A DNA stretch of 63,209 bases, the filler included, from Olpidium bornovanus S191 (Eukaryota; Fungi; Olpidiomycota): NCBI GenBank assembly GCA_017911155.1. It is 28 parts of 28 records of this genome, joined end to end, with 100 filler letters (N's around TTAATTAATTAA, not from the genome) between each part and the next. Parts side by side here need not be neighbours in the genome. Positions count along the whole stretch, not along the records: positions 20,206 to 22,340 come from JAEFCI010001744.1; 27 more parts are not named here. One strand, given 5' to 3'. This document shows, piece after piece, positions 19,332 through 22,440 of the stretch; position 1 is the first letter of the stretch, and the number at the start of each line of letters is the position of its first letter. The translations under genes were made by a program, and so were the position numbers. Below the pieces are notes generated by a model. The model was not told where the DNA came from. It saw nothing but the letters and a program-made list of their open reading frames with translations, and ran no database searches.

Positions 19332-20240
19332 TTCTCCGGATCGCCGAAGAGAAAAAAGGTAAAGCGACGGGGCCGATCGATGAGCACTCCGCAGCCGTGT
19401 GCTCGCCAACGGGCGTGGTTGACTTGCCAACGGGAGTGGCACTTTGCGATATCGGTCGCACCCTTACGGGCGCAATCCGCAGGAGAGGCCGCCAGTAACT
19501 TCCCTTAGGAGGACTGCTGGAGGCGCTCGCAAGAGTTAAATCGTTGGAATTGCGGCGGTGTGCGCACCTCTGTCAGGAAAACGACAAACAAGACGCACAT
19601 TGCCGGCGAGATCACCGAGGCGTCTTACAGAGACAGGTTTTAGAAACCGATCCTATGCCTCGACGGGAGGAAGATGTAGGCCCGGCTAGTATTCCGCAGC
19701 CGAACTACTTCTTGACGAAGGCAATTCTGCCCCTCCATGGTGATTCCTATTTTTCGGCCCCATACCTCGCACGCCTTTCTTTTCATACGCGACCTCCACA
19801 GCGTCGAGAAATACTCAAGAAATTTCAGGGAGGTGGCGCGGGAAATGAAGCATACGGCGTTTGGGGTCGAGGGAAAGAACCACATGGCGGAATCTTTTCT
19901 GAAGAGGCAAAGTTGGAAGGCACGCGTCCTTATTTTCAAAGGATGAGAACGCTGTGGGGAGCTTATGACAATATTGCACCCGCGGTGACTTTCGAGGCTG
20001 GCCGCTCATCGGGTAGAGGCGAGGAGAACCGGCACAACGCCACCTTCCGCCACCACGCCCTTTTCTTTTTTCGGCGGCCGCAAAATAACAAAATTTGCCA
20101 CCATGNNNNNNNNNNNNNNNNNNNNNNNNNNNNNNNNNNNNNNNNNNNNTTAATTAATTAANNNNNNNNNNNNNNNNNNNNNNNNNNNNNNNNNNNNNNN
20201 NNNNNCCGATCCATAGAAGAGCAGCCAACTAACCGGCCAG

Positions 20241-20688
20241 ATTTTGTTTGAGATTTGGCAGACTGCAATGTGCTCATACAAACCCCCTGCCACGTTGATC
20301 CCTAGAATGGACACACAGCTGGTCGTTTTCGAGAGAGACAAGATCAACCTGGACCAGCTACGGGCCGCGGGAAGCATATGCGTCATCTTCCAAAAAAACC
20401 AATGCGAAACCCACACCGTCGCACCCGGCGGAAGGTTTCATTGGCATCCACACGGAAATGGGCACCTCAAGCGCAAAATGCAGAGGATTAAAAAGGCGTT
20501 CACATGCAAGCTGTTTCAACGTCGGCGACAAGCAATCTGGGATACACCGCTGCCGCACAGATTGCCAGGTGCTACGGCAAAGATACCACCACTGCTGCGG
20601 AAAGGAGTTCGACCGCCGTTTCGACGGACTTACCAACGGTTGCGTGCTCAATACAGCAACGCCACTGGTCACGAGGAGCACTAGCTGA
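20241..20688 (+). CDS. Unidentified exon(s), convergent with the RNase III gene
   Basis: Branch point and acceptor CTAAC...CCAG at about 20224-20240, followed by an open frame (ILFEIWQTAMCSYKPP...). A Cys/His-rich overlapping frame follows. No family recognised. Confidence 0.3.
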
Positions 20689-20853
20689 CATCAGACAGTG
20701 GCCTAAACGTCTTCATGTATGGTGGCGCCCGCTTTATGGGCTTCTCGCACCGTTCCTCTACGAAAAGCGACACGGCACACCTAGATTGCCTACCATTTAA
20801 GAAGAACCCGCAGAGCGCCGGCGTATATGTTGGAGATGAAACAACCATTACGG

Positions 20854-22105
20854 TCAGGCCCTGGAGGCATCCTGCAGCCTCTTGATCATGAGATAGCAAG
20901 CCTCCTGCTCTGCCTCCTTCTTCCGGGTCCACGGTTTCGAGGTCACGGAGTATCCGAGATACGTCAATAGGCACCGGTGGAGCGGGTTGTGGTCCTCGCC
21001 TGATTTGCTGAAATCCCAGACCGGATCCGAGCAACCCGATCTCTGTACTAGCTCGAGAAAATGGCCCTTGGGGTTCCTCAGCGGCAAACTCCGGACTGCC
21101 GCTGGTGCCGGATTTATCGCGAAGTCCTTAAGCACTACAGCCAGTGCGGTTGTTCTCGCCCGGGACGTGCCTTCGTCTAGTTTCAGAACGTTGCAGATTT
21201 TGTTGTCGAATGCTCCTCCGGGCGGCCTGCACGACTTTCCCGGTGAGAGGAAGGCAGGCAACTTGTCATCACCAGCGGTTGTGTTCTCGACAGCTGTTCT
21301 GGGACGCCTGCATGACTTAGTCACCAAGAGGGAGTCCAGCGACTTGCTGATCTGCTTCAAATTTGCAACTGCATTCCCGTGGGAGATGGCGGCCTTTTGC
21401 GAAAGAAATTCCTCGATGATCGGCAAGGCAGCCTGGCGCACCCAGTACTTGACGACTTCAAATCCGTGGTTCTTTTCAATCTAAAACCGGTTCCGTCAAA
21501 CACTAACAGGGGCAAGGCCCGGAGTGTCTTTACACCATTCAGCACAGGGGCGTTACCTTATATACCAACGCTTCGAACAGGTCGGCGCCGATCTTGCTCC
21601 GGGAATTACAGCCCCAGTCATTTTCTGCGACAAACTGGATCAGGCCAAGTCGCGGCGCCACGAAATGATGCAGCATTTTATTATTGACACGGCTCTGGTA
21701 TTCCTGTTCACGGTCTTCATCGTTACCAACTGGCATCGTCTCCAGTAAGTAGTCGCTGACGACGTGGCCAAGCACACGGTCGCCTCCCCAGGCCAGGCGC
21801 TCGAGGTAGCCCCCATCTTGTACCAGCAGGCCCAGGGAAAACGACTTAGGGACGAAAACTTCGACGAACCCCGCATACTGCTCCTCGCTCAGCGGGAGCA
21901 GGGCCGCGGTGACGGGGCTTCTGCGGTACAGCTCGTTGACGAAGTCCTTCAGGTGTTTGCTAGCAGTTAGTCCTGACGCGGCTTGCTTGGCGCGGCCCAT
22001 CTTTCGCAGCCGGGCAAGGACAGGCAACACGGGCACCGTTGCGCGGCCGGGCCGGTTCTGCCAGCGCGCGGCGAGACAGAGGACGCCGCGCCGCGCCGCG
22101 AGCAT
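20854..22105 (-). CDS. Atypical class-1-like RNase III: one RNase III domain plus C-terminal dsRBD (possibly two), 391 aa, two exons
   Basis: Exon 1 22105-21557, intron 21556-21481 (GTAACG...TTTTAG), exon 2 21480-20854. Motifs: ERLAWGGDRVL, VNNKML...LGL, KIGADLFEALVYK/IEKNHGFEVVKYWV, and dsRBD NPKGHFLELVQ...GEDHNPLHRC...KKEAEQEACYLMIKRL. Confidence 0.85.
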
Positions 22106-22440
22106 GTGGGCAAGGTCTCAGCAACGCCCCGCATCGACGCTAAATAACTCGGCCTAAACAAAACTGCAAAACTCACGTCAGTTAAAATAAGCGCTTCGGA
22201 GCCGTCCGATATCCGCTTTTCCAGCCACGTGATTAAACCTGCGCCGATCTCTTTTGGAGTAGCGCGGCGGGACGCAGCTCCGCCCCCCCCCCCCCCCCCC
22301 CCCACCCCCACCCCCCCACCCCCCCCCCCCACCACCACCCNNNNNNNNNNNNNNNNNNNNNNNNNNNNNNNNNNNNNNNNNNNNTTAATTAATTAANNNN
22401 NNNNNNNNNNNNNNNNNNNNNNNNNNNNNNNNNNNNNNNN

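Follow-up and report, generated by a model that had tools for sequence, protein, structure and literature searches.

A divergent class-1-like RNase III from the fungus Olpidium bornovanus with a remodelled cleft and an expanded linker

Paralogues of RNase III are often degenerate, and RNase III folds with an altered active site have repeatedly gained new roles: R3B2 cuts single-stranded RNA, mL44 takes part in building the mitochondrial ribosome, and RNC1 aids splicing. Here we describe a divergent member of this family encoded by the fungus Olpidium bornovanus S191 (assembly GCA_017911155.1). The DNA analysed, referred to below as the window, is a stretch of 63,209 nucleotides (nt) in which 28 parts of the assembly are joined end to end with filler, and all positions count along it. 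The piece at 20206-22340 (JAEFCI010001744.1) carries this one gene on its minus strand. Its product is a eukaryotic RNase III of class-1-like layout and orphan status, in which the cleft is remodelled and the linker expanded, and nothing in the sequence analysed ties it to a pathway.

Bacterial class 1 RNase III (rnc; Aquifex aeolicus 2EZ6/2NUG, Escherichia coli 7R97, Thermotoga 1O0W) gave the best sequence, profile and fold matches to the Olpidium protein. In these enzymes the nuclease domain carries the nearly invariant signature ERLEFLGD and is followed, after a hinge of about 7 amino acids (aa), by a double-stranded RNA-binding domain (dsRBD). R3B2 has a non-acidic residue, N52, at the first metal-binding position and still cuts RNA; its hallmarks are a motif 4 loop of about 3 residues and the inverted acids E56, E113 and D116, and the family is reported only from Mucorales (PMC8136814). 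Two dsRBDs are not general in that family, being present in the M. lusitanicus protein, while the three other members tested have one; the motif 4 loop of yeast Rnt1 is extended, to 21 residues (PMC8136814). For the mitoribosomal protein mL44, recruitment in opisthokonts has been proposed, from a precursor that was already mitochondrial and has bacterial homologues (PMC6367999). In the jakobid Andalucia godoyi, an RNase III orthologue predicted to be mitochondrial was later discussed as an mL44 homologue (PMC7050145, PMC7947838). Compared by description only, the Olpidium protein has in common with it the concept of a nucleus-encoded, bacterial-type RNase III predicted to act in mitochondria, on the line that divides an enzyme from a ribosomal protein.

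The Olpidium gene has one intron, and its coding parts are as follows.

22105-21557, minus strand: coding exon 1, codons 1-183, starting at the ATG at 22105 (open reading frame, ORF, 21539-22105; splice donor GTAACG at 21556)
21556-21481, minus strand: spliceosomal GT-AG intron of 76 nt in phase 0 (GTAACG...TTTTAG, with a TTGAC branch-like site)
21480-20854, minus strand: coding exon 2, codons 184-391 and the stop codon (TGA at 20856-20854)

The spliced product is 391 aa, followed by the stop codon. Removal of the intron joins ...GADLFEALVYK to IEKNHGFEVVKYW... (ADLFEALVYK, then IEKNHGFE), and the junction aligns without a gap to ...ADLFEALVGAIYIDGGIE... of bacterial RNase III. An alternative TTAG acceptor upstream was rejected, as it reads into a TGA; the frame stays open with the chosen acceptor only. 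The splice is therefore well supported, both by this sole frame-keeping acceptor and by the ungapped join. In codon-position composition, GC content at third positions (GC3) exceeded that at second positions (GC2) in all four segments of the protein. A hidden intron in the linker was also rejected, as no credible in-frame GT-AG candidate was present and third positions were the most GC-rich there too (GC3 0.63, GC2 0.50). The locus is an intact one-intron eukaryotic gene encoding a very divergent protein of the RNase III family.

Two domains were recognised in the protein.

21844-21400, minus strand, with the intron inside the span: RNase III nuclease domain, residues 88-210, from Pfam matches and a model with a predicted local distance difference test score (pLDDT) of 80-92
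21075-20875, minus strand: canonical dsRBD, residues 319-385, with a GxxH loop (GEDH) and a KKEAEQ helix start

The Pfam family Ribonuclease_3 (PF00636) matched residues 102-181 with 33.6 bits, above its cut-off of 27, and Ribonucleas_3_3 matched residues 88-202 with 32.4 bits, slightly below its cut-off of 35. The dsrm family scored 22.7 bits over residues 320-385 (cut-off 23), and the same region reached 65 bits with a profile made from the dsRBDs among the search hits. AlphaFold run with a 121-sequence alignment gave a mean pLDDT of 71, and the run from the single sequence was uninformative (pLDDT 36). The dsRBD was modelled as alpha-beta-beta-beta-alpha with pLDDT 94-98 and all RNA-contact motifs retained, and its template modelling (TM) score to the dsRBDs of HYL1, DRB4 and Xlrbpa was 0.8-0.87. 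The nuclease-domain model superimposed on the nuclease domains of C. jejuni and M. tuberculosis with a root-mean-square deviation of 2.5-3.0 A and 30-32% identity, and the best Foldseek matches were the RNase III enzymes of Aquifex, E. coli and Thermotoga. This layout, one nuclease domain and a single C-terminal dsRBD, is that of class 1, the bacterial class. It bears out an earlier reading of the locus from the sequence alone (hereafter the sequence-only reading), which had proposed a stand-alone, atypical RNase III of 391 aa after splicing, and whose coordinates for the signature, the second catalytic motif GADLFEA and the dsRBD were all correct.

The nuclease domain was then compared residue by residue with bacterial enzymes by aligning the protein onto 120 bacterial RNase III sequences; E. 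coli numbering is used for the reference positions. Four motifs are discussed.

21802-21779, minus strand: signature ERLAWGGD, residues 102-109, in place of ERLEFLGD
21723-21709, minus strand: altered RNA-binding motif 3, DEDRE, residues 129-133, in place of the bacterial consensus EGxLS
21628-21593, minus strand: shortened motif 4 loop AENDWGCNSRSK, residues 160-171, from alignments to bacterial RNase III
21589-21569, minus strand: second catalytic motif GADLFEA, residues 173-179, in which D175 and E178 correspond to the invariant D114 and E117

The signature retains the equivalents of E38, R39, L40, G44 and D45, while E41 is replaced by Ala105, F42 by Trp and L43 by Gly; these E, F and L positions are at least 90% conserved among the 120 homologues. 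In the PROSITE pattern PS00517, which we take to require Glu at position 4 and Leu or Val at position 6, the Olpidium protein has Ala and Gly respectively, and the pattern does not match. Three of the four metal-binding acids (E41, D45, D114 and E117) are present, as D109, D175 and E178, so that the loss of the first catalytic Glu and the retention of the other acids, both noted from the sequence at the outset, stood up in the mapping. The equivalent of E100 is also kept (E161), and altogether five of the seven conserved acidic residues remain.

Both RNA-binding motifs of the nuclease domain have changed as well, a feature that the sequence-only reading had not included. Motif 3 reads DEDREQEY where the consensus is EGxLSxxR, with E65 changed to Asp, G66 to Glu and S69 to Glu, and the motif has turned acidic; the nearly invariant homologue positions E129, G130, L132, S133 and R136 all differ in the Olpidium protein. 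In motif 4, a deletion of four residues relative to the bacterial enzymes removes the G97 equivalent, G99 is replaced by Ala, and 12 residues of the loop remain. A deep mutational scan of E. coli RNase III found that E41, D45 and E117 tolerate no substitution and that motif 3 is intolerant, and identified G97 and G99 as the most sensitive positions of motif 4 (PMC10037077). On the other hand, weak activity remains in vitro in E. coli E41A, and F42W is functional (PMC8708148 Table 1). Judged from these residues, the catalytic centre reads as neither intact nor erased. The protein thus stands between enzyme and pseudo-enzyme, as five of seven acids are kept and positions immutable in E. coli are changed.

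The same substitutions bear on whether the protein is a catalytically dead, non-ribosomal dsRNA-binding pseudo-enzyme that binds or chaperones structured RNA in the manner of maize RNC1. The equivalents of E41, E65, S69, G97 and G99 are all changed, and E. coli tolerates little or nothing at these positions (PMC10037077); inactive proteins of the RNase III family, RNC1 among them, are also known (PMC8708148). However, the acids kept include the D45, D114 and E117 equivalents, which are those lost in known inactive members, and the site occupied here by Ala105 is non-acidic in R3B2 too, which is nonetheless active (PMC8136814). We consider a dead pseudo-enzyme unlikely, though it deserves serious consideration.

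No orthologue was found in an exhaustive phmmer search of 1.84 billion representative proteins, which returned 67 weak hits, none below 1e-10. These hits were the dsRBDs of assorted eukaryotic proteins and the nuclease domains of assorted bacteria. A word-indexed search of 5.8 billion proteins gave five weak hits, all to chlamydial RNase III; this restriction to Chlamydiae is an artefact of shared short words. A chlamydial origin was rejected, since unrelated bacteria scored equally in the exhaustive search and the tree showed no such affinity. Scans of metagenome and viral contigs and exact look-ups of both exon ORFs gave no match. A viral origin was likewise rejected, the BFVD fold matches being weaker than the bacterial ones and made mostly through the dsRBD.

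Profile-profile comparison with hhalign matched the protein to the bacterial RNase III profile with a probability of 96.8%, and its score against the bacterial profile was 45.7 bits, compared with 100-215 for ordinary bacterial enzymes. A neighbour-joining tree of 34 nuclease domains (Kimura distances, 200 bootstraps), which is crude and in which long-branch effects are likely, gave the protein a long branch and no robust placement. It was sister to mL44 alone in 3.5% of bootstraps and to Rnt1-like proteins alone in 13.5%, and to a canonical metagenomic RNase III, P0012, in 40%. P0012 (212 aa), the nearest neighbour in the tree, represents a cluster of canonical RNase III sequences encoded on short contigs from metagenomes, and has in common with the Olpidium protein the motif GDRVL and a G-x-DHNP dsRBD loop. 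Identity over the nuclease domain was 12-13% to mL44 and 21-35% to catalytic enzymes. The protein is a member of the RNase III family outside the recognisable mL44, Rnt1/Pac1 and R3B2 subfamilies. As it clusters with neither mL44 nor Rnt1/Pac1, it can fairly be called a new, lineage-restricted RNase III.

Compared with bacterial class 1 enzymes, the protein shares the equivalents of E38, D45, E100, D114 and E117 and an aromatic residue at the F42 'ball' position. It differs from them in the change of E41 to Ala and of L43 to Gly, in the acidic motif 3, in the shortened motif 4 lacking G97 and G99, in a linker of 110 aa in place of the short hinge, in an N-terminal extension of 54 aa, and in being encoded by a eukaryotic gene with a spliceosomal intron. 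The linker contains an internal repeat.

21399-21076, minus strand: linker, residues 211-318 (about 110 aa), from AlphaFold and profile tests
21318-21283, minus strand: direct repeat copy 1, SCRRPRTAVENT, residues 238-249, from repeat comparison
21237-21202, minus strand: direct repeat copy 2, SCRPPGGAFDNK, residues 265-276, from repeat comparison

In the sequence-only reading the linker had been taken for a second, degenerate dsRBD, of which helices 1 and 2 were placed at residues 219-231 and 286-300. Helices were predicted at both places: residues 218-238 in the single-sequence AlphaFold run and 190-237 in the alignment run cover the first, and residues 292-301 and 289-304 respectively overlap much of the second. 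No homologue covers the linker, so that the AlphaFold alignment leaves a single sequence there. In the alignment model the last nuclease helix is prolonged to about residue 237; beyond it come some 50 residues of disorder, then a weakly predicted helix (289-304) and finally coil; residues 238-290 had pLDDT 31-39 and no strands. The two helices are thus probably real, with no beta-sheet predicted between them. Searched with a dsRBD profile built from 116 domains, the linker scored -3 bits in hmmsearch, compared with 65 bits for the true dsRBD, and had a probability below 1% in hhalign, compared with 99.6%.

The two repeat copies (KSCRRPRTAVEN, 21318-21283, and KSCRPPGGAFDN, 21237-21202) form an internal duplication of 27 codons. 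Offset by 81 nt, they share 27 of their 36 nt, a value reached in none of 300 codon shuffles (maximum 25). The duplication fits growth of a flexible linker, and not a decayed dsRBD. A second dsRBD in the linker was rejected on the profile, profile-profile, structure-prediction (pLDDT about 32, no strands) and internal-repeat evidence; the lack of such a predicted fold is what the sequence-only reading had itself named as refuting it. The claim of two dsRBDs thus falls, and of the degenerate domain only the helices stand. Two further hints of such a domain were insignificant: a weak phmmer extension into the first dsRBD of P0020, and the resemblance of TAGDDKLPAF to the GPxH loop, at -3 bits.

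The N-terminus of the protein lies outside the bacterial RNase III core.

22105-21944, minus strand: N-terminal extension, residues 1-54

Bacterial RNase III proteins align only from about residue 55, and neither the Pfam scan nor the exhaustive phmmer search gave a match to residues 1-54. The first 53 residues include 8 Arg and 4 Lys but no Asp or Glu, together with 10 Ala and 8 Leu, and judged from this composition the N-terminus looks like a mitochondrial presequence. A CGCCG unit is repeated 3.4 times at 22084-22100, within the first codons that encode this Ala- and Arg-rich stretch. Because the 5′ end is GC-rich and repetitive, the codon-position evidence that codons 1-35 are translated is weakened.

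With these features in hand, the protein can be set against R3B2. Both are stand-alone eukaryotic RNase III proteins that fail the family signature, and both have a non-acidic residue at the first catalytic position (A105 and N52). The Olpidium protein might match Mucorales R3B2 in function and cut single-stranded RNA as part of a degradation pathway that bypasses Dicer and depends on RNA-dependent RNA polymerase; the shared loss of the first acid favours this, and the altered motifs 3 and 4 could shift the seating of RNA in the cleft. Unlike R3B2, however, it has a 12-residue motif 4 loop rather than one of about 3, the canonical, non-inverted acids D109, D175 and E178, and no second dsRBD. 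The nuclease domain of R3B2 lies at the extreme N-terminus, whereas the Olpidium protein has the presequence-like extension, and a putative organellar presequence would fit ill with a cytoplasmic role in RNA interference. The R3B2 structure 6ZDW was not matched in the PDB sequence search at E<=10 and was outside the top 50 Foldseek matches, and the family is known only from Mucorales. An R3B2-like architecture, as first proposed, therefore gave way: there is one dsRBD, the lost catalytic acid is the only feature in common, and there is no specific affinity in sequence or fold. We regard an R3B2 analogue as very unlikely.

The mitoribosomal protein mL44 (yeast MrpL3 3J6B/5MRC, Neurospora 6YWE, human MRPL44 3J7Y) also combines an RNase III-like domain with a degenerate signature and a dsRBD, and the Olpidium protein could be a mitoribosomal mL44, orthologous to MrpL3, made odd by fast evolution and poor database sampling. 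The presequence-like N-terminus would agree with this, as does the length (391 aa, compared with 390 aa in yeast mL44); the Neurospora mL44 signature also reads ...NLAFVG..., and mammalian mL44 was among the fold matches (E ~2e-4). The Pfam pattern was abandoned as a discriminator, since that of yeast mL44 is nearly the same (PF00636, 34.6 bits). Against an mL44 identity, no mL44 chain in the PDB was matched at E<=10, although in a control search yeast mL44 recovered the Neurospora (8e-43) and mammalian (~1e-6) proteins. BLASTP against yeast mL44 gave no match, and hhalign against the mL44 profile gave 2.9% for the Olpidium protein, where E. coli RNase III gave 96.8%. All four catalytic acids are lost in yeast, Neurospora and human mL44, which share a YPxLP motif; the Olpidium protein keeps three of the acids and reads ETMPVGND where mL44 has KYPRLP or EYPDMP. 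It also lacks matches to the mL44 families PF22935 and PF22892, both of which are matched by yeast and human mL44, its dsRBD is canonical rather than of the mL44 type, and its linker is about 110 aa long instead of about 20 residues. Together with the low identity and bootstrap value given above, this makes an aberrant mL44 decidedly unlikely.

Like the Olpidium protein, Rnt1p/Pac1 (4OOG, 5T16) is a eukaryotic RNase III with a single nuclease domain and one dsRBD, and the helix that follows the nuclease domain is similar. An ordinary nuclear orthologue, processing pre-rRNA and snoRNAs, would be consistent with the PDB sequence match to yeast Rnt1 (E 0.025), which includes the post-domain helix W-R-x-x-A-x-P-x-I-E-E, and with the score of 37.8 bits for the fungal Rnt1-like protein P0029. 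But Rnt1 has the canonical signature and an extended motif 4, neither of which is found in the Olpidium protein, where the signature is non-canonical and motif 4 is shorter even than in bacteria. Rnt1 also carries an N-terminal dimerisation domain. The similarity was no better than that to bacterial enzymes, Rnt1 was outside the top 50 fold matches, and bootstrap support was low. A nuclear Rnt1/Pac1 orthologue is accordingly most improbable, and neither this group nor mL44 attracted the robust clustering that was named beforehand as the outcome contrary to a separate lineage.

The missing orthologue, the substitutions at key residues and the linker duplication might also be expected of a decaying or non-functional gene copy. 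However, the phase of the intron is correct and the frame is open for 391 codons across it, every segment has a higher GC3 than GC2, and the dsRBD keeps all its RNA-contact motifs in a confidently modelled fold. We therefore give hardly any credence to a decaying copy.

The reading that we prefer, and hold with about even confidence, is that the gene encodes a lineage-restricted variant of bacterial-type RNase III with a weakened or altered nuclease centre, which is possibly organellar. In such a protein the nuclease domains would dimerise, with Trp at the 'ball' position as a substitution of the kind tolerated in E. coli, and the dsRBD, on its long flexible tether, would capture double-stranded RNA. 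The three-acid metal site (D109, D175 and E178, helped by E102) would support at best a weakened or altered Mg-dependent cleavage, which would replace the canonical cut of both strands of double-stranded RNA. Its N-terminus points to mitochondrial import, in which case the protein would descend, as a relic or an offshoot, from the organellar RNase III of bacterial type that supplied mL44. The RNase III predicted in jakobid mitochondria and the mitochondrial precursor of mL44 favour this view. A stronger version is that the protein is a nucleus-encoded, mitochondrion-targeted bacterial-type RNase III with a working, remodelled site, and so either a living intermediate between the ancestral nuclease and mL44, or a nuclease of altered substrate evolved independently, as R3B2 was; this we consider decidedly unlikely.

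Several observations weigh against the preferred reading. The intolerance of E41 and motif 3 to substitution in E. coli means that the protein may be catalytically dead, and in the absence of orthologues purifying selection cannot be shown. The AlphaFold alignment consisted of bacterial sequences only, which biases both the model and the fold ranking towards bacterial RNase III. The possible presequence is called from composition alone, and the start codon itself can be questioned: Met36 (22000-21998; AAGATGG) has a better Kozak context than Met1 (CACATGC), and Met1 is preceded, 27 nt upstream, by an ATG in another frame. The frame opened by this upstream ATG runs from 22132 to 21967 on the minus strand and takes in the positions of Met1 and Met36; were it transcribed, it would serve as an upstream ORF that overlaps the gene.

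What the protein would teach depends on which of these readings is correct. An active enzyme would reveal how much of the two-metal site and of RNA-binding motifs 3 and 4 can be dispensed with. A mitochondrial location would bear on how an organellar nuclease gave rise to mL44. A dead paralogue, fast-evolving and confined to its lineage, would matter only locally.

The piece at 20206-22340 contained no Rfam family and no tRNA. Downstream of the RNase III gene, a convergent plus-strand ORF of 125 codons (MDTQLVVFERDK...) at 20307-20684 stops 170 nt short of the stop codon of the RNase III gene. Its GC content by codon position (0.60, 0.44 and 0.60) is a coding-like pattern. With no homologue in Pfam, the PDB or the databases, it would be an orphan gene if it is a gene at all. 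A second plus-strand ORF of 76 codons, at 20458-20688, contains a CX9C-like pattern, CQVLRQRYHHC, and matched UPF0203, the TRIAP1/Mdm35 family, very weakly (E 0.6), with no match in the PDB. This resemblance is probably due to chance, and the downstream plus-strand ORFs were rejected as genes with relatives, no homologue having been found in Pfam, the PDB or the databases. At the other edge of the piece, a plus-strand tract of C with occasional A extends for about 58 nt (22283-22340). On the strand of the gene it reads as poly-G with occasional T, about 180 nt upstream of the start codon, and it could be a low-complexity or G-quadruplex-prone stretch of the promoter region, or an artefact of the assembly end.

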